IMG/VR virus record: IMGVR_UViG_3300032116_000001
Span: 248,001-312,000 of that record
Strand: one strand, 5' to 3'
Length of the DNA: 64,000 bases
Part shown: in pieces, positions 2,974 to 47,140 of the stretch
Layout: the number at the start of each line of letters is the position of its first letter
Numbering within the stretch: position 1 is the first letter of the stretch
Program-made: the position numbers and the translations under genes
The notes under the pieces: model-generated
Databases searched by the model: none
What the model was told of the DNA's origin: nothing
What the model saw: only the letters and a program-made list of their open reading frames with translations

Positions 2974-3004
2974 AGCCCTGCAAATGAAAAACATTTGCAG
3001 GGCT
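2974..3004 (+). terminator. Hairpin after recD2, probable terminator
   Basis: 13-bp stem AGCCCTGCAAATG / CATTTGCAGGGCT followed by a T-rich tract. Confidence 0.7.
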
Positions 3005-3023
3005 GCTTGGTTTTTGTTGAGAA
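2999..3023 (+). promoter_or_regulatory. Putative phage late promoter AGG-N18-AGAA
   Basis: Same spacing recurs at 7 intergenic sites in the window. Confidence 0.6.
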
Positions 3024-3087
3024 TTTTTATTAAGATATTGAGCAACTTTATTGTTCATCGTAACTTCTGAGGAGATTTAAACACAAA

Positions 3088-3930
3088 ATGTTAAGAAAAT
3101 TCGCCGAAACTGCCATGTGGCTTGACCAGCAGGGGCTTTTTGCTGAAGCTGATGTTGTAACTGACGTGCTTCGCAAATATGCTGCTAATGCCCTTTGGGA
3201 GGCAGATGACGAAAATGATGTTGAGGAAATTGACCCATATCATGCTCAGATGTATCACACAATTAAGAATTTAGACTTAAGCGACCCTGAACACCTAGAA
3301 ATTATTCGCGGCGCACATCCAGAACTTGCCGATGCGATAGAAAATTATACACCTGGCCGCAGAATACCAATGAAAGAGCCAATGCGGTATGGACCTCGGA
3401 CAGTAATGTTGCCCCCAGGATTTAAAAGCAATTTTGAAAAAAGACTCCCAGAGTTTTTTATGAGCCCAGATCAACTTCAACGCAACAGAGAGGCTTTTTA
3501 TGACAGACTCGATAAGGCCACACGCAACCGATCTCGTCGTGCAACTTTTGATTTAGATTATGCTTCTACAAGCAAACCTGGATATGAGCGGTCTTACATT
3601 TTTGATCCCGAATTAAATAGTCTAATGTCTTCTGACCCCGATTTTAGACCAAGCGAAAACAATGTTAGTCTTTATGACAAAAGAAAGCTTCGCGCACTTT
3701 TTGATCCAACATTTGATCTTGAGTCACTGGATGAAGACGAAAAATCTGGAAGAGAGCGCTATTTAGGCGTTGATCCCAAGACGGGTGAACCATACTCTCT
3801 TCCTAAGCAGATTGGTTGGGCTCACCGTCAAATTAAGCCCGAAAGTGTTTTAACATTCCGCGGTCACAAAGGCGAAGTCGATCCCGAAACTGGAAAGCGC
3901 AAGCCAAATTACTACTTTAAAGCCAGATAG
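3088..3930 (+). CDS. Hypothetical protein with N-terminal A-x2-LD-x2-G-x3-EAD motif; possible virion/internal protein
   Basis: AMWLDQQGLFAEADVVTDVLRKYA; GAGGAG SD; ends TAG-TAA. Confidence 0.75.
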   Translation: MLRKFAETAMWLDQQGLFAEADVVTDVLRKYAANALWEADDENDVEEIDPYHAQMYHTIKNLDLSDPEHLEIIRGAHPELADAIENYTPGRRIPMKEPMRYGPRTVMLPPGFKSNFEKRLPEFFMSPDQLQRNREAFYDRLDKATRNRSRRATFDLDYASTSKPGYERSYIFDPELNSLMSSDPDFRPSENNVSLYDKRKLRALFDPTFDLESLDEDEKSGRERYLGVDPKTGEPYSLPKQIGWAHRQIKPESVLTFRGHKGEVDPETGKRKPNYYFKAR

Positions 3931-3944
3931 TAAAAGGATACATT

Positions 3945-5009
3945 ATGGATAAGCCTTGGTTAAAATCAGGAATACAAAGGTTGGATGAGGCGGATTCCGC
4001 CCTTATCCGCGAATCTGATTTTCTTTACAAAGAGGCTATTCGCGGCGAGATGGACTGGGGAGGCTACGGAAGAACCGCGCTAGAGGGCGGAGCAGGAGGG
4101 GCTATCGGTGGCGCTCTTTTCGGGGGCGTGGGAGCTGTTCCTGGGGCTGCCATTGGTGCGGCGGGTAACGTCGCGATCAAAGGCATAACAGACATATGGT
4201 ACAATACTCGCTCGAACCAAGATAAAGCATCTTGGCAAGCTGGCGATCTTGAGGAGAGATTGAACAAACTTGCGGACTTAATTCAAGGGCAAGACTCAAC
4301 TCTAGCCTCGGTACTAAAGACATTAGGTAACCAATACAAAGAGTTTGTTGACGGGCATATTCAGGGAAGAAAATCTGAAAATTTTCAAAGCAATAGATTC
4401 AATATTTCTCCTGAAGAAATGACGCAAAAATTTCAGCAGGAATATGCTAATTTACAAAACTTAAGAGCCTCATCATACGAGAGTATTAATCAAATTGTCA
4501 GAATAGCATCATCTGCGGATAATCAAAACTATTTTATATCAAACTCTAACAATTCGCCATCTTCAAATTATGGCCATGACTTAGGCTCTTCCGCTAAGCA
4601 ATTAGGCACGGAATTAGGCACAGGTGCATTGGGTGGTAATGCTGGGGAATACGCAGTTAAGAAAACTGTTCAAAACCTTGCTCCCAATATGTTAAAAGGC
4701 GTGGGCAGCCTAAAGAGTATGGGCGTTGGATTAGTCGGCGAATTAGGTGTTGGAGCTATCTTTGATGCCATTGAAAATTTACAAGGTGCTCAAAAACTTT
4801 ATCACAATCAGTCAGTAGATATACAAAAAATTATCACAGAAGTTAACAGGCTTACAGGAAATGATCCTCAAGTATTAGCTGCTGGAAATCAAGTTTGGAC
4901 TTATGTTTTAGAAGGCAAAGAGCGAATTGATAATATGGTTCAAAACGCCCAGTCGTCATATGCACAAAATAAATCTGCGAACACTAATGTTAGTAGATTT
5001 AAAAGATAA
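3945..5009 (+). CDS. Hypothetical glycine-zipper protein; possible internal virion/ejection protein
   Basis: Two Gly/Ala-rich GxxxG segments (GGAGGAIGGALFGGVGAVPGAAIG; LGTGALGG...GELGVG) between helical regions. Confidence 0.7.
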   Translation: MDKPWLKSGIQRLDEADSALIRESDFLYKEAIRGEMDWGGYGRTALEGGAGGAIGGALFGGVGAVPGAAIGAAGNVAIKGITDIWYNTRSNQDKASWQAGDLEERLNKLADLIQGQDSTLASVLKTLGNQYKEFVDGHIQGRKSENFQSNRFNISPEEMTQKFQQEYANLQNLRASSYESINQIVRIASSADNQNYFISNSNNSPSSNYGHDLGSSAKQLGTELGTGALGGNAGEYAVKKTVQNLAPNMLKGVGSLKSMGVGLVGELGVGAIFDAIENLQGAQKLYHNQSVDIQKIITEVNRLTGNDPQVLAAGNQVWTYVLEGKERIDNMVQNAQSSYAQNKSANTNVSRFKR

Positions 5010-5014
5010 ATCTA

Positions 5015-5209
5015 ATGAAAAGCCCATGTATTAAGATTTGCAAACTTGACAACAATGTCTGTATTGCTTGCAAGCGATCATTAGAAGAAATACGTAATTG
5101 GTCTCAATATTCAGATGAACAAAGAGAATTAATTATGATGGATATTAAAAATAATCGATTTTCTATTGAGTGTTATATGTATAAACCCAATAATGAAGTT
5201 AAAAAATGA
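5015..5209 (+). CDS. DUF1289-family small Cys-rich protein
   Basis: SPCIKICKLD..VCIACKRSLEEIRNWS signature. Confidence 0.85.
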   Translation: MKSPCIKICKLDNNVCIACKRSLEEIRNWSQYSDEQRELIMMDIKNNRFSIECYMYKPNNEVKK

Positions 5210-5240
5210 AATTTTAACTTTGCTCTAAGCGGTTACTGGT

Positions 5241-6632
5241 ATGATTGATCCTAATAAAATTATCTCAGATGCAAATTGTGTTGTTTGCGGTACTCCACCT
5301 GAAGAAGGCTCAACTGACCAGCGTTACATTCAGTTTCATGATCGTAAAATATTTTTGTGCGGCAAGCATGCCGAGGCCTTTCATATTGGTGCTGTGATGG
5401 GTCAGCTAGAGCTAAATTCTGCATTAGCGGAATTTATTTTAAAAATGGACGATCCATTAAATTCTCAACAAATCAAAGAGCACATACTTGAAATGGTTCC
5501 GTCAGCACGGCGGCAACTTGAAGATAAGCAATTGCAAGCTCATATAAAAGGAACATATAAGGAGCAATCACCTAGAGAAATTTATGAATATCTTGACAAA
5601 AATGTTATTGGCCAAGAAGAAGCAAAAAGACGCATAAGTTTAGCAGTCTACGAACATTATAAAAACGCCCAAAGACGCGCAGATAGCCCGCTATTAGAAA
5701 AACAAAATATACTTATGCTTGGGCCTTCTGGAAGTGGAAAAACATTAATTGCAAATTCCATTGCGAAAATATTAGACGTTCCATTTGTGTCCGCCGATGC
5801 AACAAGTTATTCTCCCACAGGGTTTCAGGGCGCAGATGTTGATACCATTATTTTTGAAATGATGTACAAATCAAGCGGGGTACATCATGCCGCAGAACAA
5901 GGCATTGCATTTATTGACGAAATTGACAAGCTTTCAACACATGCAATGCAAGGCACAAAATCAGAGGGCTTAAACTACGCAACACAAAGTTCTTTACTTA
6001 AACTTATTGAGGGCAAAAAAGTAAAAGTGCCAATGCAAAATTTGGGCCACCCGCCTGGAACAATGACAATGGTGGATACAACCAAGATGCTTTTTATGTT
6101 CGGCGGGGCATTTAACGGACTTGCTGAGCAGGTGGGCAAGTTGATGGGATACTCTGGAAGAACCATTTCCTTATCCAAAAGAAATGAAGAAGATCGTATA
6201 GAATCTTCGATACGCTCGTATAATATTCTTGCCGAAGCGTCAACCGATGTGATCATAAAAGCGTTGATAGATTTTGGAATGAACACCGAGTTTATTGGTC
6301 GAATTCCAATTATTGTTCCGCTTGCGCCACTAACTAAAGAGCAACTTTACAAGTGCTTAATTGATTTGCCAAACTCGCCAGTTTCCAGATCGCAAATGCT
6401 TTTCGCGGAATCAGGAGTAAAATTGGAGTTTGAGGAAAGCATGCTTCAGGCAGTTGTTGAAACAACTGCCAAATCAGACACAGGAACTCGTGCTTTAAAT
6501 ACTCTTGTTAAAAGAGCTGTTAGCCAAGCCGCGTTTGATCTTTTAGGTTCAGAACCTTCCAGAAAGATCAAACATGTTGTTATAACAAATGAGTGCATTG
6601 CCAATCCAGAATCGTATGTTACAATTAATTAA
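5241..6632 (+). CDS. clpX: ClpX-like AAA+ ATPase (divergent)
   Basis: N-terminal CxxC...CxxH, LDKNVIGQEEAK, KQNILMLGPSGSGKT, FIDEIDK, LLKLIEG, EFIGRIP, TGTRAL. Confidence 0.9.
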   Translation: MIDPNKIISDANCVVCGTPPEEGSTDQRYIQFHDRKIFLCGKHAEAFHIGAVMGQLELNSALAEFILKMDDPLNSQQIKEHILEMVPSARRQLEDKQLQAHIKGTYKEQSPREIYEYLDKNVIGQEEAKRRISLAVYEHYKNAQRRADSPLLEKQNILMLGPSGSGKTLIANSIAKILDVPFVSADATSYSPTGFQGADVDTIIFEMMYKSSGVHHAAEQGIAFIDEIDKLSTHAMQGTKSEGLNYATQSSLLKLIEGKKVKVPMQNLGHPPGTMTMVDTTKMLFMFGGAFNGLAEQVGKLMGYSGRTISLSKRNEEDRIESSIRSYNILAEASTDVIIKALIDFGMNTEFIGRIPIIVPLAPLTKEQLYKCLIDLPNSPVSRSQMLFAESGVKLEFEESMLQAVVETTAKSDTGTRALNTLVKRAVSQAAFDLLGSEPSRKIKHVVITNECIANPESYVTIN

Positions 6633-6894
6633 GCCATGATTTAGCTACAAAGAATGCAGCAAGAAGCCAAACTAATCCGATTATAATTGCAGGGCCGACC
6701 CCTGATCCAACAAAAGCCGAAATCATAACCCATGTGCCAAAGGCGATGCCTCCTGTTACGGCAATATAGATCAACACACCCATAAAAAGCAAAGGTAAAA
6801 GGCTCCATTCCTTTCGAGAATTGGGCAGAGCGGCATAAAGAATGATCGTGCCAATCGCTGACATAATCACGAGATTAATGATATTTAAAAACAT
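6625..6894 (-). CDS. Small membrane protein (about 3 TM segments)
   Basis: Hydrophobic 89-aa ORF with AAGGA SD. Confidence 0.7.
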   Translation of the reverse strand: MFLNIINLVIMSAIGTIILYAALPNSRKEWSLLPLLFMGVLIYIAVTGGIAFGTWVMISAFVGSGVGPAIIIGLVWLLAAFFVAKSWLN

Positions 6895-6929
6895 GTGTTC
6901 CTTATTGTACTATATTATTTCTCTATTAT

Positions 6930-6945
6930 AAAAAAGGGGATTTTT
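6930..6945 (-). promoter_or_regulatory. 16-bp motif AAAAATCCCCTTTTTT, copy 1
   Basis: Exact copies at 38121 and 60097; each lies upstream of a gene start. Confidence 0.6.
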
Positions 6946-6952
6946 TGATTCA

Positions 6953-6977
6953 AGGTTTTTTTAGAAAAAATATTGAA
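6953..6977 (+). promoter_or_regulatory. Putative late promoter AGG-N18-TGAA
   Basis: Upstream of the 7007 gene; conserved spacing. Confidence 0.55.
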
Positions 6978-7006
6978 TTTATACTTATACCCTTGGGCAA
7001 GACACT

Positions 7007-8230
7007 ATGACTAATAAATTTTCAAAGACAAATCCAATTGAGCGCGTGTTGGATAATATGCGCGAAGCGGCCATAAACGCTGACTCAGAAAGAGTTGTAG
7101 TTGCGGCTGGTGAGCTAAAAAGTCTGTGGAATTTTTTCAGACGAACGCGAAGTCCGTTTAAAAATACGGATGAAGTCAAAGAGTTGTTTAAAGGGCACAC
7201 TCCAAGTGCCCAAAATGAAATTTTGAACAGAGTTCTTCAAGAAAAAACACTTGAGGCCTTGTCTCCAACAAAAAGAGGAGTTCAAAATATTGGCGTCGGA
7301 AACTTTATGCCTGATGACATGAAAAATCCAACAAAAATTCATGACAGTGACACTTTGCGAGCAATGATTGAGTCTGCTAATTTTGGCCAAGGACGAGGCC
7401 AAATTGGCAATCTAATACAGAAAATCATAGGTGATAACAGGCTAAAGCAAACATTAGAAAAACCACTTGATCCATCAATTGTCGTCAGGGTTGATAACTT
7501 TAATATGAACCCTAAACCTGTTACGATGATGGAATTACTCACCAATCCATCAGCGGCAAACCTGAAAAGAATTGACTCACAAGGCCATGCTGTTGATTAT
7601 GATCAGGTCGAGCTAAATAAAGAAGTAGACAAAATAGCAACTCAATTTGCTGAGCAATACAAAGATGTTGCAGTTTTTAATTATATGAAGGGACTGGCTT
7701 ATAAAGCTATTCTTGCTGTCATTGGTTTAAAGGCTGCGGCTGGTATTGCCATTCCTGCGGCTGCTGCAGCGACCATGGGTTCACCAAGTTCCACGGACAT
7801 ACAAAAATCACTCAATCCATCGCCCACTGCTCCAGTTTCGCCCAATAATACGCAAACAAATAGCTCAAGTTCTGGTCACCCGCACATGACTAACGGCAAC
7901 AATTTTGGTTCACTCGGAGGTATTCAGTCGGCTCCCGATATGTTTGGCAATGATACATTTACAAACAAAGTTGTTGATTATTCTTCTATGTTTAGAGAAA
8001 ATTCAACAAATGACTTACGAATAAGTCTGGCCCAATCTATGATTCAAGAAGCGCCAGAAGAGGCAAAAGAATACCTTGCGTCGATTCCTGATGTTCATCA
8101 ATTTGTTCAAAATATCATTAGCATTATTAATCAACATGGTGGGCCAGAGTCCACGAAAGCAATAGAACATGCAAATCAGTATGTGGGAACAATTGCTGAC
8201 AAAACTGATTTAATATCAAAAACAATTTAA
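7007..8230 (+). CDS. Hypothetical protein; possible virion internal protein
   Basis: 407 aa with one Ala-rich hydrophobic segment and an S/P/N-rich linker. Confidence 0.75.
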   Translation: MTNKFSKTNPIERVLDNMREAAINADSERVVVAAGELKSLWNFFRRTRSPFKNTDEVKELFKGHTPSAQNEILNRVLQEKTLEALSPTKRGVQNIGVGNFMPDDMKNPTKIHDSDTLRAMIESANFGQGRGQIGNLIQKIIGDNRLKQTLEKPLDPSIVVRVDNFNMNPKPVTMMELLTNPSAANLKRIDSQGHAVDYDQVELNKEVDKIATQFAEQYKDVAVFNYMKGLAYKAILAVIGLKAAAGIAIPAAAAATMGSPSSTDIQKSLNPSPTAPVSPNNTQTNSSSSGHPHMTNGNNFGSLGGIQSAPDMFGNDTFTNKVVDYSSMFRENSTNDLRISLAQSMIQEAPEEAKEYLASIPDVHQFVQNIISIINQHGGPESTKAIEHANQYVGTIADKTDLISKTI

Positions 8231-8247
8231 GGCAATAGGGGTATTTT

Positions 8248-8988
8248 ATGAATTCAAACAATTATCAAAGTTTAGTTAAAATGGCGTCTAAAGCCGATAA
8301 CACGGGAGATTACAAAACAGCAGACGCTATTACAGATTTTCTTAGAATTTCCCAGGCTTTAACTTTAAACAAGGCCCTTCAGGGTGTTCCTGGAATGGAA
8401 ATGAGCACTCAAAACCTTGGCGACTCTGCCGAAGGAGCATACAAAGGTTATTTCAAGGGTAATCCTCGGGGAACATTCCAGGATTCATCATCATCTGCAC
8501 CCGATGCACCGATGGTATCACAGGCTAACAATCCTTTAAACTGGGAGGGTAAAAGCGCGGAAGAAATAGGAAAAATGATGTATGATGAATCAATTGCGCT
8601 GCGAAATGACCCAAGCATGGTTTACAGAAATCAGCAAAGCCTAATGCAATATGCAGAATTTCTCCGTCGATATCCAAATTTACCACAGCCCGTTAGACAG
8701 CAAATGTACCAGGCTATTTCTGGGATGCTTTTGGGACAAATGTGGGGTCAGAGCCCGCAAGTTATGCAACAAACTATGGCTCGATTATTCCAATCGTGGC
8801 CAGACATGCCAGCCGATTTGAAAAACTTTTTGAACTCTGAAGCACAAAAGATTATGCAAATGCAATCAACGAATCAGCAAATGCAGGGTGGTAGCGCAAA
8901 TTATTCAGGCCAATCATATAACAGCATGCCAACAACCAACTTACTTGGCTATCAGGGCGCGAGCGGAACACCAACTCCAATTACTTAA
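8248..8988 (+). CDS. Q/M-rich hypothetical protein with the shared N-terminal motif
   Basis: LVKMASKADNTGDYKTADAITDFLRISQ. Confidence 0.75.
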   Translation: MNSNNYQSLVKMASKADNTGDYKTADAITDFLRISQALTLNKALQGVPGMEMSTQNLGDSAEGAYKGYFKGNPRGTFQDSSSSAPDAPMVSQANNPLNWEGKSAEEIGKMMYDESIALRNDPSMVYRNQQSLMQYAEFLRRYPNLPQPVRQQMYQAISGMLLGQMWGQSPQVMQQTMARLFQSWPDMPADLKNFLNSEAQKIMQMQSTNQQMQGGSANYSGQSYNSMPTTNLLGYQGASGTPTPIT

Positions 8989-9009
8989 CTTGCTGTATAA
9001 AAATCTTAA

Positions 9010-9873
9010 ATGAAAAAGTTTGTTAAATTACCTGTCGGCCAAGCTTGCGAGTGCCCGTTTTACCTCCAGGATGTATCTGGTGATAACAAGTGTGTTTTTA
9101 AATTCTTTGTAACACAAGACAAACTTTCAAAATCTTTTTTAGAGCCAGAAGATTTCAGTGAAGACACCTGGAAGGAAGATTGCGAAGGTTTATATTCCCA
9201 GTGTTCTGTTTTGCCTATAATTTGGCAAATGGATGAAGATATCGAAAGCAATGATGAAGAAATCACAGAAGAAGATCAACTAGAAAGTGAAGATTCTGAA
9301 GATTACGACGATTCTGATGAGCCTGATGATTACGAGGATGGAGATGAACATGAAGTTGTTCAAGTTAGCATTCATCAGGTTGATAATCCTTATGCTGTGA
9401 AGTCTGATATTTTGGTTTTGCCTACAAACATTGGCTTAACAATAGATGACTATAAATTAAACCGCCTTTCAAAAGGCTTAATTCAAGAAGAATGTGATAA
9501 AATTGCCGAAGATTCTGTGAAGATGGGCCACGTTTACCTAACAAGCAATGGTGGAGAAAAAAGCTTAGTAGTTCCCAAGGCTATCGTTCATGCAGTTGTG
9601 GCTGGATTTAGCAGGTTGGTCAATGAGCAAGACATAAAAACAGCAATGAGAAAATCTTTATTAATGGCCGAAGAATTAGGCGCAAATAAAGTAGTAATTC
9701 TTCCATGTGATTGTGGCACTCATGACATTGCTCACACGGCCAGAGTGCAGCTATCTGCAATATATACATTTTTAAACAGTGTTGAAACAAAATCAATCAC
9801 CCATGTATATATTGTTATGGAAGATGAAGAAAGTTTTAATATTTTCCAGGAATACTTTAATAGAATATTCTAA
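9010..9873 (+). CDS. Macro-domain protein with Cys-rich N-terminus and acidic linker
   Basis: DILVLPTN, GHVYLTSNG, KAIVHAVV, AEELGANKVVILP..CG. Confidence 0.8.
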   Translation: MKKFVKLPVGQACECPFYLQDVSGDNKCVFKFFVTQDKLSKSFLEPEDFSEDTWKEDCEGLYSQCSVLPIIWQMDEDIESNDEEITEEDQLESEDSEDYDDSDEPDDYEDGDEHEVVQVSIHQVDNPYAVKSDILVLPTNIGLTIDDYKLNRLSKGLIQEECDKIAEDSVKMGHVYLTSNGGEKSLVVPKAIVHAVVAGFSRLVNEQDIKTAMRKSLLMAEELGANKVVILPCDCGTHDIAHTARVQLSAIYTFLNSVETKSITHVYIVMEDEESFNIFQEYFNRIF

Positions 9874-9893
9874 TAATACAAAGAGGAAAACCA

Positions 9894-10247
9894 ATGAGTG
9901 GCTCTGCTAAAACAACAAAATCATCTGAGAATTATCAGAAAATTTTGCAAGCTATGTTGGATAGTTACAGGCATCCAGTTTGGATTGTAGAGGATGATCA
10001 TATTCGACTCATGAATGAACCTGCGAAGGAGCTTGAAAGCCAGGGTTTTGTAATACAGAACTTATCGCAAAACATGAATGTCGGAGAAGTGAAAATTTTG
10101 AGCTTTAAAGGTAGAGACATAAGTATTAAAAAATCAATGATAAAAAATGGTGGAACTGTATTTTTGCATGAGGTGAGTTTTGAAACTCCATCCACCGCGA
10201 GGCTTAAAGCATCTACGGCTAAATTAAGAAAAGCGATTACTAGGTAA
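9894..10247 (+). CDS. Hypothetical protein with PAS-like N-terminus
   Basis: LQAMLDSYRHPVWIVEDDHIRLMNEPAKEL resembles the start of a PAS fold. Confidence 0.6.
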   Translation: MSGSAKTTKSSENYQKILQAMLDSYRHPVWIVEDDHIRLMNEPAKELESQGFVIQNLSQNMNVGEVKILSFKGRDISIKKSMIKNGGTVFLHEVSFETPSTARLKASTAKLRKAITR

Positions 10248-10266
10248 TTTATTAATTGAACTCGAA

Positions 10267-10310
10267 AAAAGAATCTTGGGCATGTTTTCAAAACGGTCAA
10301 AGATTCTTTT
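10267..10310 (+). terminator. Inverted repeat, possible terminator
   Basis: AAAAGAATCTT...AAGATTCTTTT between genes. Confidence 0.45.
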
Positions 10311-10344
10311 TAATTATAAAAGAATCAAAAGAGAGTGTTATACA

Positions 10345-11043
10345 ATGAGTGAAAAAAATTCAAATAATTCATCTATAGAAGATTTGAAAATGTTGCGCAA
10401 TGAAATCACAGCGCAAACTGAAGCTTATGTGGAATTTTCTAATGCACTCGTCCGTATTTACGATCTGCAAACAGAGATTAAAGCAGACATTGAAAAACTC
10501 AGCGAATCTGACTCAAAAGAAGTACGCGAAATTTTTGAGAAAATAACAACAATGAGCGAACTGCTGAAAACTTATCAGCAGTATCAACGCGAAGGCGATG
10601 CATTAATGTCGGAAGAAATTGAAGAGTTTAATGCAGTTTTGTCTCATTTTGGCTCTGAATTGGAGTTGTTTAAGGCCAAAATTGAGCAGCTTATTAGTGA
10701 CGATGGCAAGCTCGGCAGTGCCAATAGAGAGGCTGTCGAAAGTGCTTTAAATGATATGATTTCTGAATTTGAAATAATGGCAAAGGATACTCGTGCTCAT
10801 TTTGAAAGTGAAAGCCAAGCAAGAAAACAAGTTATTGAAAAGTTAGATCAAATAACAAATTATCTCGAATCTTTTAAACAAGTTCAGACAGGTTGGACCG
10901 AATGGAAAAAAAGAATTGGATGGGGAATTGCGGGCATTTCTGCTTTAATTGCAGTTCTTATGGCACTGGCTCAATTTAATGCATTGAAAATTGAATATTT
11001 CCCAAAAAACCATGAAGCAACGCCTGTGACAAGGCCACGATAA
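10345..11043 (+). CDS. Coiled-coil protein with C-terminal TM helix
   Basis: Heptad-rich sequence, then WGIAGISALIAVLMALA; start moved to ATG 10345. Confidence 0.75.
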   Translation: MSEKNSNNSSIEDLKMLRNEITAQTEAYVEFSNALVRIYDLQTEIKADIEKLSESDSKEVREIFEKITTMSELLKTYQQYQREGDALMSEEIEEFNAVLSHFGSELELFKAKIEQLISDDGKLGSANREAVESALNDMISEFEIMAKDTRAHFESESQARKQVIEKLDQITNYLESFKQVQTGWTEWKKRIGWGIAGISALIAVLMALAQFNALKIEYFPKNHEATPVTRPR

Positions 11044-11046
11044 GAT

Positions 11047-11439
11047 ATGAACGTTAAAGTAATTTCTGGAGCCAATAATAACATTGATGCAACGGGCCTT
11101 AAAAACAAACTTAAAGCCATAGGCTTGCATGAAAAGCACGATGTGATTGCGCTTAATGATGATCAAGCAAACTTTGATCTTAATATATGGTTTGGCGACA
11201 ATCCTCCTGAGAATACAGAGGCCTTAATAATGAATTCCAGTGAATTTAGTGGCCATGAAATGCTAAAGAAATATCCAAGATTATTATTATTGGCTCAAAT
11301 AGTTTCTACAAATGGATTAATACCTGAGTTTTATGCTGTTTATGAAAGAACGTCGTATAAGCCAGTGTTTTTTATTAACAAACACGAAATGGAAGGTTAT
11401 TTTGTGGACAAAATAGCATCAGTACAGGAGCTACCATAA
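11047..11439 (+). CDS. Hypothetical protein
   Basis: 130-aa ORF in a tightly packed operon. Confidence 0.7.
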   Translation: MNVKVISGANNNIDATGLKNKLKAIGLHEKHDVIALNDDQANFDLNIWFGDNPPENTEALIMNSSEFSGHEMLKKYPRLLLLAQIVSTNGLIPEFYAVYERTSYKPVFFINKHEMEGYFVDKIASVQELP

Positions 11440-11759
11440 TGTCAGAAAGAAAACCAGCAACAATTTCTTGCAAATGTGTAGAATGCGGAATGTCGTTTTA
11501 TGAAAAAGGCGATGCAGTTGGCGTCATGCCCTCGATGCGGCCTGTAAAAAAATGGCAGCGTGGTGATCCTTTAACAACATGGGCAGACTGGGTCATGCAC
11601 ATACAAACACACTGTCCAGACTGCAGAATAGTTGTGCCACCACCCGATTGTGTAAACGACTTGCGGGCTCAACTTTCTGAATTCAGGCATGCAAATTCAC
11701 AAGATTTTGAGCTTGAGTCTGATGAGTACACAAGATTATTTAATGAAAGGCTTAAGTAA
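11439..11759 (+). CDS. Zn-ribbon hypothetical protein
   Basis: CVEC...CPDC; TAATG overlap with the upstream gene. Confidence 0.7.
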   Translation: MSERKPATISCKCVECGMSFYEKGDAVGVMPSMRPVKKWQRGDPLTTWADWVMHIQTHCPDCRIVVPPPDCVNDLRAQLSEFRHANSQDFELESDEYTRLFNERLK

Positions 11760-11806
11760 TGTGTTAATTTGACTTATTTTTTACGAATAGATAAATAAGT
11801 CAAATT

Positions 11807-12589
11807 ATGATCGACGGCAAAATTTCTATAGACGTGGTGTTACTAGGTCCGCCAGCAAGTGGAAAAGGCACTGTTGTGTCTTATTTTTTGGATAAATATA
11901 ATTGGAATGCAATTGTTCCTGGCGATATTTATAGAAAAATACGCGACGAAGACAGCGACCTGGGCGCTTTAGTTAGAGAATCTCTTGAAAGGTACCATCA
12001 TTGTCCCGATGATTTAACAAATAGAATTATTCACAAAGCTGTTGATGATTGTCTAAAAATTAATCAACTCTTGGATTTACCAAATTCTAGATTTGTTTTT
12101 GATGGTTATCCAAGGTCTTTTGAGCAATTGGATTATTTAGATAAAAATTTCAATGTTTCTGCATTTATTCATCTTGATGCGCCGATTGAAACCACACTAG
12201 CTGCCGCAATCAATCGAAGATATTGTTCTGGTTGCAATAAGGTGTTTTCAAAGCAGTCTCCCCCAAAAATCACGGGTCCGAACATTTCGTGCATAGACGG
12301 TGAAGCTTCAAGACCTTATTTAACAAATACTTGTCTTGAAAACGAAGCCCAGTGGCTTTCGTGCTCGGATTCTTGCGCTGCTACATCAGAAAACAACTGG
12401 ATTACTCGATGGGACGATAGCGAGGAAAAGTATTATGAAAGAATAAGCGCATTTAACCAGAACACACTGCCTGTAATTGAGGCAATTTCACAAAGACCAA
12501 ATTATAAAAAGTTTCAAATTATCGGTAACGATAAGGGCTTAAGTGAAATTGAAGATTGGCTTAACGCTGTCTTAGGTAATAATTGTTAA
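11807..12589 (+). CDS. adk: Adenylate kinase family protein with expanded Cys-rich LID
   Basis: LLGPPASGKGT, GDIYR, FDGYPRS..Q, RRYCxxC, RWDD. Confidence 0.85.
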   Translation: MIDGKISIDVVLLGPPASGKGTVVSYFLDKYNWNAIVPGDIYRKIRDEDSDLGALVRESLERYHHCPDDLTNRIIHKAVDDCLKINQLLDLPNSRFVFDGYPRSFEQLDYLDKNFNVSAFIHLDAPIETTLAAAINRRYCSGCNKVFSKQSPPKITGPNISCIDGEASRPYLTNTCLENEAQWLSCSDSCAATSENNWITRWDDSEEKYYERISAFNQNTLPVIEAISQRPNYKKFQIIGNDKGLSEIEDWLNAVLGNNC

Positions 12590-12870
12590 TTTTTTCTTTG
12601 AACTCCATGAAGAGCTTCTTGAACTTCATTTTCAAAGACATTTGTACTCATAATTTCATCGTTGCTGACACCATCAAGACTAAGTTTCTGCAAAATTATG
12701 TTAATCAAATCGGATATCTTCTTGTCCTTAAGTCTTATGTCGTCTTGATTGTTGCTTTCGGGATAAGAAGATATAGCCTCGTCAATTTCGTTAGCTTCGT
12801 CAATGAAGCCCGATTCATCCAAGTCGTTTGCAATTTGGGCCAATCTTCTGATCACATCAACACTGATCAT
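12586..12870 (-). CDS. Small hypothetical protein with the shared motif
   Basis: RRLAQIANDLDESGFIDEANEIDEAI. Confidence 0.75.
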   Translation of the reverse strand: MISVDVIRRLAQIANDLDESGFIDEANEIDEAISSYPESNNQDDIRLKDKKISDLINIILQKLSLDGVSNDEIMSTNVFENEVQEALHGVQRKN

Positions 12871-12873
12871 GAT

Positions 12874-13182
12874 TTACCTCTTTGTAAATATATCTACAAA
12901 TATTTGATCAATTATTTTAGACGCCTCTGCAGATCGACCAGATTCTATAATAGCAGAGGCTTTTTCCATCATTTGCTCAGTGGTTGGATTATTTTGAAGG
13001 AAAGATTTTTGTGCATCTATGCAAGTGGGGCACTGCCAATAAGATACAAAAAGAGGTCTGTGTTTGCGACAAACAGCTTTGCCACAATTATCACAGAAAG
13101 CCCGCGCCCAGCCTTTCACCTGTCTGTTGCAGATAGAACAAATCGGGTCACTATAGAATTTCTTAATTGGTGCGCCTGGCAT
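12874..13182 (-). CDS. Zn-finger protein with the shared motif at its C-terminus
   Basis: CSIC, CDNC, CRKH, CPTC, then KASAIIESGRSAEASKIIDQI. Confidence 0.75.
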   Translation of the reverse strand: MPGAPIKKFYSDPICSICNRQVKGWARAFCDNCGKAVCRKHRPLFVSYWQCPTCIDAQKSFLQNNPTTEQMMEKASAIIESGRSAEASKIIDQIFVDIFTKR

Positions 13183-13206
13183 GGTTTCTTAACCTTATGT
13201 TTTTAT

Positions 13207-13231
13207 TTCTCTAATTTAAATAATCAATCCT
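13207..13231 (-). promoter_or_regulatory. Putative late promoter AGG-N18-AGAA
   Basis: Upstream of the 13182 gene. Confidence 0.55.
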
Positions 13232-13452
13232 GGTTGAACTTCAGCCAACATATAACGTTTTTTGAGATTGTTCTCAAAAAAAATCCCCTAAATTTATTTA
13301 AGCAAAATGCTAAAATATGGGGAAACAAGGCGGACACTGCCTGCAAACCGATTGTGTCGCCCGCGGCCACGCCTGCGTTGCTGGTTTTTTTCGGTACCAG
13401 CACAAAGACGTTGCGTAAATAAAACCTGCGGGAGAATAAAGGTAAAAAAAAT

Positions 13453-14187
13453 ATGAATATTAGAAACATAACCTTGACATTCGCGATTCTTTTCGCGTCG
13501 TATGCCACTGCTACATTTGTGCCCAACAGCACGGATGCCACAACTGTTGCCAATCAGGCTTCAAAGCCAATTAGCACTAAGGCGGCGAACATTGTACAGG
13601 TACATCAAACAAACACGGTGGATCAGGAACAAAAGCGCATTAGTGAATTTGTTTACATTGTTCAAAGCCGTTTGGGCCGCGAGTATGCCGACAGAGTTGC
13701 AAAGGCAATTGTAACGTCGGCGCGACGCAATGGCCTTCCTCCAATGATGGTTGCAACCACAGGATATATCGAAAGTGAATTTCGAATGGTAAGCCGCCCA
13801 GCTATTGGAATTATGCAAATTCTTCCTTCAACTGCTCGAAGAGTTTTTGGAAACAGCGGTCTCGATCCTTATAAACTCGAAGACAATATTGAAATGGGGT
13901 CGAGATACTTGGCAACCCATTATCGAAAATATGCTGGTTCATACTCTAGACTCAGAGGTAACACAACTAGTAGAAGCGGGTCTACTGGCTCTTCAGCATC
14001 CGTGCCAAATTTAACTCCTGATCAACAAGTTATCGTTATGCGACAAACTTGGGGGAGATATAATGGTAGTGGAATGAATGGAGCTTATCAAAGAAAAGCT
14101 ATGATTGTTTGGAATCGTGTTACAAAGTTAACCCCAGATGATTGGAAAAAGCATGTAAACACAAAAGGTCCTCTCTGGAAGAACTAA
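13453..14187 (+). CDS. Lytic transglycosylase (SLT family) with signal peptide
   Basis: IESEF (catalytic Glu), AIGIMQILPSTA, DNIEMGSRYL, RYNG; hydrophobic N-terminus. Confidence 0.9.
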   Translation: MNIRNITLTFAILFASYATATFVPNSTDATTVANQASKPISTKAANIVQVHQTNTVDQEQKRISEFVYIVQSRLGREYADRVAKAIVTSARRNGLPPMMVATTGYIESEFRMVSRPAIGIMQILPSTARRVFGNSGLDPYKLEDNIEMGSRYLATHYRKYAGSYSRLRGNTTSRSGSTGSSASVPNLTPDQQVIVMRQTWGRYNGSGMNGAYQRKAMIVWNRVTKLTPDDWKKHVNTKGPLWKN

Positions 14188-14188
14188 A

Positions 14189-14917
14189 ATGCTGAACAAA
14201 CCCATGATTCTTGATCTAAGAGGATATTTGTCCTATGCCATGCCTGAAAAAATTGCGCATGGACGAGGGCAGACAATGGCTAAGGACTTGATGGGTCAGG
14301 CTAGGTATACAGTTTATACCGAGGCTGCAGAAGCCATTGCAGAGGTTACTTATAGTCGCCTCTGCAATGTGATTGGCTTGTCATGTGTTCAATCAGAGTA
14401 TGCCACAGGCCTAGATGGCGTAAAACCCAATATCGTAAGCGCTTCAGAGTATGATGATTCTTGGATGCCAGCACCAACAAGTGTAGTGTCTCTGGGCTCA
14501 AGGCAGGCCAATAATGATGCTATAAAAAATTATGGATTGTCTATGCTTTTATTTAATCCCTTTACAAATAAAAAACCTGGCTATATTAAAGGTGATAAAT
14601 CTTTTGTAAAAGCAAATAATGGGCAGTGTTTCTATTCATTTGAGTTGAAAAAAATTTTAGAAGGAACCGATAAGGAATACAAATCCCCATATTCGCCAAT
14701 GTCTGTGGATGTTTATTTTCAAATTAGCAGCATGTTTCCTCAAATCAAAGAGATAATTCCACGAATTGAATCACTTACTGATGAGCAAATTGAATGGTGC
14801 GCAAGCACGCCAGGAGATTTGTATGGCGGTAAAATTGGCTCTGAATTTGTAAGTCTTCGGTTGCATCTACTAAGAGATTTTGCAAAAAAAGCAACAAGGG
14901 CCATGCTTGATGAATAA
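14189..14917 (+). CDS. Hypothetical protein; possibly a degenerate HipA/PI4K-like kinase fold
   Basis: AIAEVTYSRLCNVIGL and IESLTDEQIE..LRLHLL resemble HipA-like helices; no catalytic DxHxxN. Confidence 0.5.
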   Translation: MLNKPMILDLRGYLSYAMPEKIAHGRGQTMAKDLMGQARYTVYTEAAEAIAEVTYSRLCNVIGLSCVQSEYATGLDGVKPNIVSASEYDDSWMPAPTSVVSLGSRQANNDAIKNYGLSMLLFNPFTNKKPGYIKGDKSFVKANNGQCFYSFELKKILEGTDKEYKSPYSPMSVDVYFQISSMFPQIKEIIPRIESLTDEQIEWCASTPGDLYGGKIGSEFVSLRLHLLRDFAKKATRAMLDE

Positions 14918-14939
14918 GATTTCCAATAATTGAAAATTA

Positions 14940-14970
14940 AAAAAGCCGAAAGTTTTACTTTCGGCTTTTT
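14940..14970. terminator. Bidirectional intrinsic terminator
   Basis: AAAAAGCCGAAAGT-TTT-ACTTTCGGCTTTTT between convergent genes. Confidence 0.85.
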
Positions 14971-14992
14971 TAACGGACGGCTTACGGCTTTT

Positions 14993-15424
14993 TTAATAGC
15001 CTCTATTCCATCCAGATGGGTATCTAGATGCAGGAAGCGAGCCTTTGGTATCAATCAGTGATACATCTTCGGTAAGGCGGTTAAGCGCAAAAGCGAATTC
15101 TTCAGCTTTTTGCGTCAGAGTAACAAGTGTCAAAGAAAGAGCGTTAGCAATGTAATCCTTTTCAATTGCGCTAGTAGTAGCAATTGCAGCTTGATAAGCA
15201 TTTATTTCTGTTTCAAGAGTTTGAATAACTGTGTCAAAATCTTCGATAGTGGCCGTGGAATCTGTCAGATCGGTAGTACCTCTGGATTGGTCGGTGGGAT
15301 AAGGCCCAGCCTGGCCAATTGTGTTGACAGTAATGTTCTTAATTTCACGATTGTCCGTGATGTTATTTACGGAACGCTCGCCAGGAGCAGTCCCGCTTAT
15401 GAAAGATGAAGGGTAGTTAGGCAT
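14993..15424 (-). CDS. Hypothetical protein, probably structural
   Basis: 143 aa; AGGAG SD; late-promoter motif upstream. Confidence 0.75.
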   Translation of the reverse strand: MPNYPSSFISGTAPGERSVNNITDNREIKNITVNTIGQAGPYPTDQSRGTTDLTDSTATIEDFDTVIQTLETEINAYQAAIATTSAIEKDYIANALSLTLVTLTQKAEEFAFALNRLTEDVSLIDTKGSLPASRYPSGWNRGY

Positions 15425-15479
15425 TTAAGTTTCGTTCTCCTGTAGTAAGCAGCCCGCTGAAGCGTGCCACATTATCACA

Positions 15480-15504
15480 TTCTAGAAAATGTTCTTTGTC
15501 ACCT
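15480..15504 (-). promoter_or_regulatory. Putative late promoter AGG-N18-AGAA
   Basis: Upstream of the 15424 gene. Confidence 0.55.
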
Positions 15505-15574
15505 TTTCTTAAACTTTACAATCTATACCTTCTCAAAAGTTATTTTTTTTGTTTTTTTCAAATTTTCTGAATGT

Positions 15575-15599
15575 AGGCCCTGATCTTGTATTTGCTGAA
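15575..15599 (+). promoter_or_regulatory. Putative late promoter AGG-N18-TGAA
   Basis: Upstream of the tail-fibre operon at 15650. Confidence 0.55.
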
Positions 15600-15649
15600 T
15601 AATAAAATACATCTTTTGCTTTCAAAAAGTAAGCAATAAGGGCGATCAG

Positions 15650-17380: not shown

Positions 17381-17423
17381 TTGAAAAAACTGTAAAATTA
17401 AAAACATAAGTCGGAGAAAGTAA

Positions 17424-19862: not shown

Positions 19863-19866
19863 TTTT

Positions 19867-27721: not shown

Positions 27722-28666
27722 TTATTCAACTGGTCTGATGGACTGAAATCTTGCTTCGCCACTTGTGATATTGATTTTAAATCTTGCCCAAAACCTTAAT
27801 GGATTGCTTAAAAGCGTAGGTGGCTGCGTGTTCCCGTTAGTTACATCGTTAATAATATCATTGATCGAATCATTAATTTGCCTTTTCACCCAAGTAGCAG
27901 CATTAATCAAAACAACTCCGTCAAATCTAAATGATCCTGGAGAAGACATACCGTCCGACGTATTATCAAGAACCGAACCTGCCACTACCCATGCGGACCC
28001 ATTCCATACCTCCGCAGTTAATGCAGAATTTGAACCTGTGGATACGGTTGAAAATTCAAATAGCCATTTGTTTTGAGGTTTTTCTGACCCTACATAAACA
28101 TAATCATTTGCATTATTAAGTGGAAAATTTTCTCCCCCATGTAGGGTCATGGCGCTTGTGATGTCAGTCAGCGCCCCCGTGCCACTATCTTCATGAACGA
28201 CTTTGAAGCTTAGATCACGTGCTATCCCAGTGCTATCCCCCCTGTTGGCAGTTGTTGGGAAGCTTCTCTTCCCTTCGGCTCGAACAGTAAATACAGTGCC
28301 TGTTGTGATCGATGCAGCAGAAATCCTAAGATGTAGAACACCAACATTTCTTACATCTTCAACAAAACATTCACTTAAATCTAATACAAGCATATTATTA
28401 GCCATACTTCCCGAGGCTGATCCTGCTATGTAAAGTGGCTTGTTCGTTGCGCTGGCGGCTCTGTAGAGCGCAGAGTCTGTCAACACTGTCACCGTTACGT
28501 TGGCAATGCTGTTATTTGCCGACAGAATAATTCTATCAACAGTGCTGCTTTTTGGCCATCCACCGATGCTAATGTATACTTCCGTTGCCCCCGCCAATGA
28601 AGCTGGCGCACTGGCAACTTTACTTATGACGGAATTTTGATTTATTATAGATTGAATGTAATTCAT
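27722..28666 (-). CDS. Probable virion structural protein (beta-rich)
   Basis: DYVYVGS, AEVWNGSAW, DNTSDG...FRFDG, FWARF; late-promoter motif upstream. Confidence 0.7.
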   Translation of the reverse strand: MNYIQSIINQNSVISKVASAPASLAGATEVYISIGGWPKSSTVDRIILSANNSIANVTVTVLTDSALYRAASATNKPLYIAGSASGSMANNMLVLDLSECFVEDVRNVGVLHLRISAASITTGTVFTVRAEGKRSFPTTANRGDSTGIARDLSFKVVHEDSGTGALTDITSAMTLHGGENFPLNNANDYVYVGSEKPQNKWLFEFSTVSTGSNSALTAEVWNGSAWVVAGSVLDNTSDGMSSPGSFRFDGVVLINAATWVKRQINDSINDIINDVTNGNTQPPTLLSNPLRFWARFKINITSGEARFQSIRPVE

Positions 28667-28703
28667 GAAACCTTTTTCTCCAGCCTTGGATACGTCATTA
28701 TTG

Positions 28704-28728
28704 TTCTGCTTTTCTGCGAACCGATCCT
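28704..28728 (-). promoter_or_regulatory. Putative late promoter AGG-N18-AGAA
   Basis: Upstream of the 28666 gene. Confidence 0.55.
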
Positions 28729-38120: not shown

Positions 38121-38136
38121 AAAAATCCCCTTTTTT
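38121..38136 (+). promoter_or_regulatory. 16-bp motif AAAAATCCCCTTTTTT, copy 2
   Basis: Upstream of ruvB, followed by TATAAT. Confidence 0.6.
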
Positions 38137-38179
38137 CAAGCCTTAGATAAGATATAATAGACATCAAGGCACATTTAAA

Positions 38180-44217: not shown

Positions 44218-44240
44218 TTGTTGTATAACAATATTTGACT

Positions 44241-44274
44241 CAAGAGGACAAACTAAATTTAGTTTGTCCTCTTG
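44241..44274. repeat. Perfect 34-bp palindrome after groL (terminator or operator)
   Basis: CAAGAGGACAAACTAAA|TTTAGTTTGTCCTCTTG. Confidence 0.85.
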
Positions 44275-44302
44275 GCTTTGAAAATATCCCAGGTAAACAT
44301 AT

Positions 44303-45178: not shown

Positions 45179-45207
45179 TGCAACAAAACTGCATTATATA
45201 ACGTATA

Positions 45208-45243
45208 ATAATTGGCTCAACTGATTGTAGTTGGGCCAATTAT
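45208..45243. terminator. 15-bp hairpin between the two pilin-like genes
   Basis: ATAATTGGCTCAACT-N6-AGTTGGGCCAATTAT (one G-U pair). Confidence 0.6.
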
Positions 45244-45255
45244 ATTAGAATTATT

Positions 45256-46017: not shown

Positions 46018-46064
46018 ATTTGCAACAGGTGTTGATCAACAAACGTAGAATAATAAAACACTAC

Positions 46065-46422
46065 GGGGGCATAAGGGATCGATTGACGTTGCTATCTTAT
46101 GTTTGCAAGGCGCGGATGTATCCTTGGCCGCGATAACAAAGGATGCAAAAAGTAAATGCGGAAAACAACTTCGCTTTCGCTGCTTAATTAAGCTGGCGCA
46201 TGAACCTGAGACGAGTCTGTAGTTAATGGGGATTGTAAAATAAATCAGACTTAGCTTTGAAACTTCGGCTTGTAGTTGAAAAAGCGATATTAATCAAGCT
46301 GCTGTCAAGAAAGTGCTGGCCTCTAGCCAAAGCTTGACTTAAGATTAATATGAGGAGAACCTTGTGGCGAGCATAGGCTCTGTACGGACAACAAGCGGGT
46401 TCAAATCCCGCTGCCTCCACCA
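46065..46422 (+). ncRNA. ssrA: tmRNA with tag (A)AENNFAFAA
   Basis: 5' GGGGGCA pairs with 3' TGCCTCC-ACCA including the G3-U Ala determinant; T-arm GCGGG-TTCAAAT-CCCGC; resume codon GCG at 46158, TAA at 46185-46187. Confidence 0.95.
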
Positions 46423-46427
46423 ATTTT

Positions 46428-46461
46428 GCAGTATGATTTTTTCATACTGCTTTTATTTTTT
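46428..46461 (+). terminator. Intrinsic terminator after the tmRNA
   Basis: GCAGTATGA-TTTTT-TCATACTGC followed by TTTTATTTTTT. Confidence 0.85.
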
Positions 46462-46617
46462 GGGCGGACTCAACTTAAACATGCCCACAGGGGCTTTTTT
46501 AATAAAATGCTGAGCAGCCAAAAGTGAATAGAATTTTTTAATATCTCCTGCTTTAAATTTGACTCCGCTATAAACTCCAGGCCGACTGCATTCTACATAA
46601 AAAACTTTTCGGTTCAT
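46453..46617 (-). CDS. Small hypothetical protein (54 aa, MNRKVFYVECSRPG...)
   Basis: Manually read ORF that fills the gap between the tmRNA and the tRNAs. Confidence 0.45.
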   Translation of the reverse strand: MNRKVFYVECSRPGVYSGVKFKAGDIKKFYSLLAAQHFIKKAPVGMFKLSPPKK

Positions 46618-46691
46618 ATGATTTTTTTTGGGTTTTTAGTCCCAAATTGCCTACTTTTTATTTAAAAATACGTATTATAATTATATTGCTT

Positions 46692-46762
46692 GCTCCATTA
46701 GCTCAATGGTAGAGCTGGGGTCTCTAAAACCTTGGTCGCGGGTTCGATTCCCGTGTGGAGCA
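46692..46762 (+). tRNA. tRNA with CUA anticodon (amber suppressor) no. 1; CCA not encoded
   Basis: Acceptor GCTCCAT/GTGGAGC, D-arm GCTC..GAGC, anticodon arm GGGGT-CTCTAAA-ACCTT (CTA at 46724-46726), T-arm GCGGG-TTCGATT-CCCGT, A73. Confidence 0.85.
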
Positions 46763-46783
46763 GACAATATATTAAAAATACGC

Positions 46784-46858
46784 GCTCTAGTAACTCAGTG
46801 GTAGAGTGGCCCTCTCTAAAAGGGCATGTCGCGGGTTCGAGTCCCGCCTAGAGCGCCA
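46784..46858 (+). tRNA. tRNA with CUA anticodon (amber suppressor) no. 2
   Basis: Acceptor GCTCTAG/CTAGAGC, D-arm ACTC..GAGT, anticodon arm GCCCT-CTCTAAA-AGGGC (CTA at 46816-46818), T-arm GCGGG-TTCGAGT-CCCGC, G73-CCA. Confidence 0.93.
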
Positions 46859-46882
46859 AGGTTTCTAAAACAATACAGAGTC

Positions 46883-47098
46883 ATGTCAAACAAAAACAAT
46901 TATCAAGAATCTGATCAACCAGACGGCGTATTTCTTAAAGGGGTCATGTATGGGGCCGTCATAAGCATTTTTATTTTAATTATAGCAAAGGCCTTATCAT
47001 TGATTTTGAGCCTAAATATATTTGCCAGCTTGGGCATTTCCGTGCTTGCTATTTTCTTAATTGCTTTATTTTTTGAAATTTTTCGGAAAAGATGCTAA
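46883..47098 (+). CDS. Small membrane protein (2 TM segments)
   Basis: MSNKNNYQ... followed by two hydrophobic helices; start moved downstream of the tRNA. Confidence 0.7.
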   Translation: MSNKNNYQESDQPDGVFLKGVMYGAVISIFILIIAKALSLILSLNIFASLGISVLAIFLIALFFEIFRKRC

Positions 47099-47115
47099 CT
47101 TTTTTGTTGAAAAGC

Positions 47116-47140
47116 AGGTATTAAAGATATAACACGAGAA
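47116..47140 (+). promoter_or_regulatory. Putative late promoter AGG-N18-AGAA upstream of the leader/tRNA-Lys unit
   Basis: Exact spacing match to the six other copies. Confidence 0.5.

Follow-up and report, generated by a model that had tools for sequence, protein, structure and literature searches.

Introduction

Phage-encoded sigma factors with short promoters of their own are well known. Bacillus phage SPO1 and phage T4 provide examples, and in SPO1 several sigma genes and promoter classes form a cascade in which gp28 directs middle and gp33/34 late transcription. In Salmonella phage 7-11 the sigma factor gp47 uses a bipartite late promoter, GTAAtg-16-aCTA, with transcription starts 6-9 bp downstream, and gp36 of phiEco32 recognises a single element (PMC8948821). 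Two bacterial promoter types are also relevant here: that of Firmicute SigH (Spo0H), whose consensus RMAGGRWWW-N11-12-RRMGAAW amounts to AGG-N18/19-GAA (PMC4754846), and the B. subtilis promoter of the ECF factor SigW, tGAAACnTTTt ... CGTA (PMC5758882). We have analyzed a short two-block element, AGG-N18-WGAA, in a stretch of 64,000 nucleotides (the window) corresponding to positions 248,001-312,000 of the 378,848-bp virus record IMGVR_UViG_3300032116_000001, where it had been put forward as a putative late promoter; this specific motif was previously undescribed.

Taken as a whole, the statement that the element is a promoter read by a phage-encoded sigma factor is the one we favor as reasonably likely. 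In the proposed mechanism, AGG-N18-DGAA (the form to which the pattern is widened below) would form the -35/-10 core for one class of promoters in this 379-kb phage and would be read by host core RNA polymerase together with a phage-encoded sigma-70-family factor, region 4 of the sigma contacting AGG and region 2 contacting (D)GAA plus the AT-rich bases that follow. With transcription beginning a few bases downstream, leaders would measure about 5-60 nt. A SigH-like sigma encoded at genome positions 109,410-110,102 would be the best candidate reader, and the class would drive head-morphogenesis, tail-fibre, baseplate-like and many function-unknown genes between genome 60 and 280 kb, probably with late or middle-to-late timing.

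Results

An element of fixed spacing upstream of phage genes

All seven N18 copies listed for the window by the first-pass annotation are present at the coordinates and on the strands it gave; each is intergenic, is directed toward the next gene and ends 16-65 nt ahead of the start codon. Three extra intergenic copies had been overlooked (15506-15530, 15557-15581 and 28662-28686, all on the minus strand). Counted over the whole window and both strands, the pattern gives 24 matches against 19.8 +/- 4.3 in shuffles and shows no excess because 14 matches fall inside genes, and the signal emerges only once intergenic, gene-oriented DNA is set apart. The rough gene map used for this separation was built on codon usage (~420 genes, 90% coding) and served the statistics only. 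Family searches for sheath, gp23 and terminase_6N had no match in the genome; the gp23 control also matched nowhere, so that negative carries no information.

Genome-wide, intergenic DNA (9.7% of the genome) holds 35 matches, against 9.1 +/- 2.9 in Markov shuffles. When the distance x in AGG-Nx-WGAA was varied from 10 to 27 in gene-oriented upstream regions of the whole genome, 31 matches were found at x = 18 and between 1 and 8 (mean 3.4) at the other distances, a spacing peak with a Poisson P of ~1e-19. Upstream enrichment across the genome, on which the first-pass annotation had staked its proposal, is thus present. The same spacing scan of coding DNA had no N18 peak; a smaller antisense peak (11) has its source in divergent spacers, where a site is sense for the opposite gene. 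A two-block motif search had also been recommended, and an unbiased dyad search without a prior pattern recovered CAGG-N18-AGAA, together with AGGT-N17-AGAA, among its top matches. An expectation-maximisation motif search was captured in its first run by tRNA T-arms; after masking of the 34 tRNA genes and one tmRNA gene of the phage, it returned TGTATAAT-like and CGATCATA elements and not AGG-N18-WGAA.

Substituting any one of the six fixed bases (AGG, GAA) brings the N18 count down to background. At the degenerate position, A occurs 22 times, T 9, G 6 and C 2, with G 11-fold over its own background; since G is tolerated at W, the motif is better written AGG-N18-DGAA and is in effect AGG-N19-GAA. 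Flanks and spacer are nearly information-free, except that G is avoided immediately ahead of AGG and that the bases behind GAA run AT-rich. The base following AGG is T in 11, A in 8, C in 7 and G in 5 cases, and that following GAA is A in 12, T in 11, G in 6 and C in 2, so that W is favored there; no other preference of the extended SigH consensus stands out clearly. The motif stands ahead of approximately 40 genes; 44 of the 45 intergenic sites in the whole genome point the same way as the next gene, sites on the minus strand are confined to minus-strand gene blocks, and the distance from GAA to the start codon has a median of 41 nt (interquartile range 29-67).

The idea that a degenerate 7-base pattern was merely picked by eye draws on the window-wide count, which does not exceed shuffles, and on the roughly 4 sites expected by accident among some 37-45 in the genome (fewer than one within the window), but it is refuted by the spacing peak, by the requirement for each fixed base and by conservation at orthologous positions on five other contigs. 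AGG-N18-DGAA is almost certainly a real functional element.

The first bases of the two blocks are 22 bp apart, which fits a -35/-10 pair, and the fixed spacing, the co-orientation with genes and the availability of cognate sigma genes are together what is expected of a bipartite sigma-70-family promoter. As the first-pass annotation had remarked, the motif bears no resemblance to the sigma70 consensus TTGACA/TATAAT. Nor does it match a T4-type late promoter, a single TATAAATA element used with gp55 and lacking a -35 block, as the AGG block is needed here at its fixed spacing. A short pair of conserved half-sites about two helical turns apart, present in three tandem copies ahead of one gene, could also be expected of a binding site for a phage or host transcription regulator and not of a polymerase recognition element. 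Against this, the half-sites do not repeat one another in either direct or inverted orientation, the strict agreement in strand with the genes and the AT-rich bases behind GAA suit a -10 element, the sites are accompanied by no separate promoter motif, and the motif specifically matches a known sigma consensus; a regulator site is therefore very unlikely, and the element is very probably a promoter.

Individual copies and their conservation in related phages

The phage record is linear according to IMG/VR and complete according to CheckV, has a GC content of 40.6% and reads well in the standard code (table 11, the only code applied), with long open reading frames genome-wide. The cultured-phage collection searched contained no close relative of the phage, and relatives were gathered through a homologous-protein search followed by retrieval of the contigs encoding those homologues. 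The first anchor was the gene starting at 15650, whose 576-residue product is tail-fibre-like through its similarity to tail-fibre-type repeats, and which is first in an operon with genes for 812- and 1600-residue proteins. It has a homologue of 48% amino acid identity on L023, a 114.7-kb JGI contig of 53.6% GC, with which the window shares gene order over 22 kb. Used as a lone query for related loci, the tail-fibre-like protein found no match; used as an alignment, it found distant tail-fibre repeats in unrelated phages.

The spacer upstream of the 15650 gene is divergent and holds four copies. The proximal of three tandem minus-strand copies (15480-15504) precedes a 143-residue gene (14993-15424, minus strand) and is kept in register in L023. 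The second (15506-15530) has its GAA one base away from the AGG of the proximal copy, and in L023 its AGG and GAA are retained while the 18-nt spacer is almost wholly replaced. The third, distal copy (15557-15581) has its L023 equivalent at 9875-9899 on the minus strand. The divergent plus-strand copy (15575-15599) lies 51 nt before the 15650 start and corresponds to 9903-9927 on the plus strand of L023. The orthologous L023 spacer thus carries three copies on the minus strand and one on the plus strand, in register with the four of the window, even though the 18-nt spacers between the blocks are for the most part different, one having gone from AT-rich to GC-rich. L023 as a whole has 18 pattern matches against 7.7, exceeding all 100 shuffles, and its intergenic spacing profile also peaks at N18.

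Two more copies of the window could be compared with L023. The AGG-N18-TGAA copy at 6953-6977 (plus strand) lies 30 nt before the start at 7007 of a 407-residue gene, and the orthologous spacer in L023 keeps AGG-N19-GAA with C at the degenerate position. The AGG-N18-AGAA copy at 13207-13231 (minus strand) lies 24 nt before the start at 13182 of a 102-residue gene, immediately ahead of whose orthologue L023 has copies at 7419-7457 on the minus strand.

A second anchor was provided by a 578-residue head gene (genome 137,569), downstream of the portal gene and of a gene for a 1426-residue protein with a prohead-protease-like N-terminus. The 578-residue protein belongs to a family of more than 350 homologues on contigs of up to 380 kb; it looks scaffold-like, being acidic and Ala-rich, and that make-up led us to set aside its assignment as the capsid protein. 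Searches of the protein atlas gave no usable result for this protein or for the 143-residue protein. The motif before the 578-residue head gene is kept in L108 (70% identity, 55% GC), in L109 (41% identity, 36% GC) and in the NCBI metagenome contigs L110 and L111 (39% identity, 35% GC). In L110 and L111 the gene for a protease-like protein of ~1400 residues is also preceded by a copy, and each copy directly follows a terminator hairpin. The intergenic DNA of L109 holds six N18 copies, against 0-2 at other spacings, all directed toward genes 28-151 nt away. On L106 and L107, which are more distant, and on L112, intergenic DNA is too scarce for the motif to be judged.

L023 and L108 (54-55% GC) share gene order with L109-L111 (35-36% GC), and the head protein is 39-70% identical. 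Such a distance of 20 GC points between relatives implies a clade that extends across very different hosts.

The remaining copies of the window lie in other regions. At 2999-3023 (plus strand), an AGG-N18-AGAA copy stands 65 nt before the start at 3088 of a 280-residue gene of no known function; its AGG falls within the descending arm of a strong terminator hairpin (2974-3004), and this copy, lacking an orthologous region for comparison, is less certain than the others. The AGG-N18-AGAA copy at 28704-28728 (minus strand) is 37 nt before the start at 28666 of a 314-residue gene, likewise of no known function, and the further match at 28662-28686, which overlaps that start codon (distance -5), is probably due to chance. 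The last copy, AGG-N18-AGAA at 47116-47140 (plus strand), lies 16 nt before a 13-codon open reading frame ending in TAG and followed by two tRNA-Lys genes (47315-47477).

Candidate readers of the element

No homologue of the RNA polymerase beta subunit was detected in a search of the phage genome. TTGACA is not enriched upstream of phage genes (5 sense against 8 antisense occurrences), a scan for the TTGACA-N17-TATAAT consensus found no excess (67 against 54.3 +/- 6.9), and Bacteroidota-type TAnnTTTG promoters are not enriched upstream of phage genes either; these checks took in the whole genome and window positions 1-20000. With neither a beta homologue nor an excess of these promoter types, host core polymerase with a phage sigma is the simplest model. 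Because the motif is unchanged in relatives of 35 to 55% GC, its reader is probably carried by the phage and not by the host, and we consider it probable that this reader is a phage sigma.

Three sigma-70-family genes are encoded in the phage genome. The one that the first-pass annotation had suggested as reader lies in the window (54715-55413, plus strand) and is indeed a sigma-70-family gene, encoding 232 amino acids in which region 2 and, weakly, region 4 are recognisable; the other two are 20-23% identical to it. The second, ECF-like and with a strong region 4, is encoded at genome 112,530-113,120 and has an AGG-N18-AGAA copy 38 nt upstream (genome 112,468), which hints at a sigma cascade. 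The third, at genome 109,410-110,102 and so outside the window, resembles SigH by both NCBIfam and structure matches. Its five best NCBIfam matches are all full-length matches to SigH/PRK08295 models (E 3.5e-32 to 3.5e-24), and its best solved structure is the sigma-H factor 3mzy (E 7e-12; next best 4e-4). It scores 102-112 bits on SigH models whose equivalog cut-offs are 208-295, so we call it SigH-like and not SigH. Orthologues of 43-70% identity occur on other phage-like contigs. The gene directly follows a 340-residue gene, which is probably a clamp loader going by synteny with L112 alone, at the end of a replication block with DnaB, DNA polymerase, RecJ and RNR.

Since it is SigH-like and the motif matches the core of SigH promoters, the 109,410 sigma is a better candidate reader than the sigma encoded in the window. 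In favor of the latter are its sigma regions 2 and 4 and the existence of orthologues at 46-58% identity. Its best family matches, however, are generic (ECF superfamily at 74 bits, then FliA and SigK) and its score on the SigH model is about 32 bits, whereas the 109,410 sigma reaches its 102-112 bits on four SigH models and has sigma-H as its best structure; the 54715 gene moreover lies in a block of the genome (280-340 kb) dominated by another promoter type, class II below. Recognition of the motif by the 54715 sigma is for these reasons unlikely, and whether the SigH-like sigma specifically is the reader is in our judgment an even call.

The likeness to SigH also raises the option that an alternative sigma of the host, for instance a Firmicute SigH, reads the motif and that the phage sigmas serve other promoter classes. 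Core and spacing of the motif do equal the Firmicute SigH consensus, and many phage genes have GGAG-type ribosome sites. This option is nevertheless improbable: the motif stays the same in relatives that probably have different hosts, the phage encodes a SigH-like sigma of its own, and near-identical DNA was found in freshwater metagenomes, and in some 'fungus' metagenomes, from 12 studies. Firmicute hosts are unusual in freshwater, and the tmRNA tag of the phage, AENNFAFAA, is presumably not Bacillus-like.

Several observations weigh against a promoter class read by the SigH-like phage sigma. The score of this sigma is far under the SigH equivalog cut-offs and its specificity cannot be assumed, and the flanks show little or nothing of the SigH preference for A following AGG and T following GAA. 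A word-based search gave few sigma homologues, representatives are on short contigs, and co-occurrence of the SigH-like sigma with the motif on one contig is conjectural for the relatives that keep the motif. The distant relatives L106 and L107, with their little intergenic DNA, hold one copy each. Start sites are inferred, and assembled RNA contigs cannot fix RNA ends. Several genes behind the motif are of non-virion type. Terminase and portal lack a copy immediately ahead of them, and the order of a cascade is blurred because a copy also precedes the ECF-like sigma gene at 112,530.

Downstream genes, timing and RNA

The preference for virion-like genes noted in the first-pass annotation was borne out in part. 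In a small hand-picked set, the motif lies ahead of 6 of 9 known virion-type genes or operons and of 0 of 9 replication genes (Fisher P = 0.009). Units headed by the motif include the protease-like and scaffold-like head genes, a 1049-residue gene that is weakly baseplate-hub-like, the operon of the tail-fibre-like gene and the 812- and 1600-residue proteins, an Ig-repeat head-decoration-like protein (via PhoH), a minor-head/lysin-domain protein, and an operon including a minor tail protein. No copy stands immediately ahead of DnaB, DNA polymerase, RecJ, RNR, the two topoisomerase II subunits, RecD2, a DHH phosphoesterase or an ATPase. However, genes for PhoH, an RNA ligase, the CCA-adding enzyme, a pyruvyl transferase, a transposase and the ECF-like sigma are also behind the motif. 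Judged by this gene content, in which most downstream genes are unannotated, assignment of the class to late expression is only slightly favored.

The transposase-like gene (genome 144,338-145,456, L011; PHROG 506, E 2e-118) lies inside the head-gene region and is preceded by an AGG-N18-AGAA copy as well as by a loose class II match. In relatives, the portal and large head genes show homing-endonuclease or LAGLIDADG signals.

A 5,901-nt (5.9 kb) stretch of the window was compared with freshwater metatranscriptome data. In one run, the sole RNA contig on this stretch covers 14976-15448 on the minus strand (473 nt, 0 differences) and spans exactly the 143-residue gene behind the triple motif. 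Its 5' end comes 32 nt after the GAA that starts at 15480, and its 3' end abuts a strong intrinsic terminator (14936-14974, minus strand). The contig is compatible with a discrete, well-expressed unit that starts past the motif, within the limit that contigs do not fix ends.

The 5' leader of the 143-residue gene (window 15425-15480, minus strand; L023 9738-9790) is conserved at the nucleotide level far above the surrounding spacer. Its retention between phages of 40% and 54% GC suggests a structured or regulatory leader.

Further probable promoter classes

Two other promoter-like patterns of fixed spacing were found in the phage genome. Class I is a very strong module of ~35 bp consisting of AAAAATCCCC, ~17 nt and ATCGGATATATAA, with 60-70 copies nearly all located at genome 1.6-60 kb (L004-L006) and often preceded by CACGATCATTATAAA. 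Its -35 part is unlike every sigma-70 consensus. In most copies an ATG is placed exactly 40 nt from AAATCCC and 3-4 nt past the TATATAA box, a spacing that suggests leaderless early mRNAs. Weaker class I examples occur in the window at ~6895-6950 (minus strand), 38123-38179 and 60099-60137 (both plus strand).

Class II follows the pattern TGCAAC(T)TTT ... CGTAT(A/T)A, with AAC-N17-CGTA occurring 12 times against about once at other spacings. It is concentrated at genome 280-340 and 360-378 kb, with examples noted at 293-340 and 370-378 kb, and precedes the tmRNA gene as well as many tRNA and small genes, in many cases leaving just 5-20 nt to the start. Sites in the window, all on the plus strand, are 45179-45210, 46020-46052 and ~46660-46690. 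The site at 46020-46052, TTGCAAC-N17-CGTAGAATA, is an ECF-like class II promoter 13 nt before the tmRNA gene (46065-46422). The first-pass annotation had counted position 46027 as an N17 variant of the AGG element; the sequence is present there but belongs to this different ECF-like class, TGCAAC-N17-CGTA, whose pattern it fits cleanly.

For the copy at 47116, either class could apply. It is an exact AGG-N18-AGAA, yet the same DNA doubles as GCTAAC-N17-GGTATTAAA, a loose class II match with a G at a position where G is rare (1 against 11 C), and the neighboring promoters belong to class II. Counting the tRNA-Lys unit among the late genes, as had been done earlier, is hence not secure. Elsewhere in the genome, the copies at 17,720 and 23,453 are embedded within class II promoters.

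The region from 46065 to 47477 forms a translation module of the tmRNA gene (tag AENNFAFAA), two tRNA genes with CTA anticodons, the 13-codon open reading frame ending in TAG (~47157-47198) and then tRNA-Lys(TTT) and tRNA-Lys(CTT). ARAGORN labels as tRNA-Pyl the two tRNAs with CTA anticodons, which are amber suppressors. General TAG recoding was not indicated, as the standard code yields long open reading frames genome-wide. A stretch in an upstream region at genome ~24,060-24,100 (L005) opens with GTAGCTCAGTGGTAGAGCG, a typical tRNA D-arm; ARAGORN made no call there, and the stretch may be a degraded or intron-containing tRNA.

Discussion

The motif offers a testable promoter grammar and a candidate sigma for a large uncultivated clade of 100-380-kb phages, known from the freshwater metagenomes of many studies, most genes of which are without annotation. 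As it marks the starts of transcription units, it could be used to split genomes into units, to sort function-unknown genes by expression class and to choose strong phage promoters. A speculative extension, which we regard as doubtful, is that this clade of huge freshwater phages runs its whole programme without host-type promoters, by means of three sigmas and three promoter grammars. Class I would then serve early leaderless mRNAs, AGG-N19-GAA the virion genes and class II the module of tRNA, tmRNA and amber-suppressor genes, and the SigH-like class would turn on the ECF-like sigma gene through the copy at genome 112,468. If this were true, translation-apparatus genes would be the last tier of a sigma cascade.

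Compared with systems already described, the motif is a real but fairly ordinary type of phage control element. As in SPO1, several sigma genes and discrete promoter classes partition the genome into blocks. The -35 element used by SPO1 gp28 starts AGGAGA; the -10 elements of SPO1 differ from this motif, and the early class of the present phage is not a host sigma-A-type promoter. Phage 7-11 likewise has a short bipartite element of fixed spacing, recognised by host core polymerase together with a phage sigma possessing regions 2 and 4, an arrangement that is inferred here. The two phages are unrelated, their elements differ in sequence and spacing, and in 7-11 both the starts and the dependence on sigma are experimental. 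Promoters of the SigW type resemble class II (TGCAAC(T)TTT-N-CGTAT), to which the 46027 copy belongs, and not the AGG...GAA class; a point of difference is the class II spacing, AAC-N17-CGTA.

The closest resemblance is to SigH promoters, which have the same AGG and GAA cores, 18-19 nt between them and an AT-rich segment after GAA; in addition, the phage genome holds a SigH-like sigma gene. The phage motif differs in its single 19-nt distance and its weak or absent flank preferences, its proposed sigma is below the equivalog thresholds and thus is not a SigH orthologue (102-112 bits against 208-295), and the phage host is probably not a Firmicute. We therefore suggest that the motif works like a SigH promoter but do not file it as a strict one, because the sigma is no equivalog and the extended consensus is not clearly matched. 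A SigH-like sigma together with a SigH-like promoter core outside the known Firmicute context would be a small and clear case of a promoter and its sigma co-inherited in a virus.

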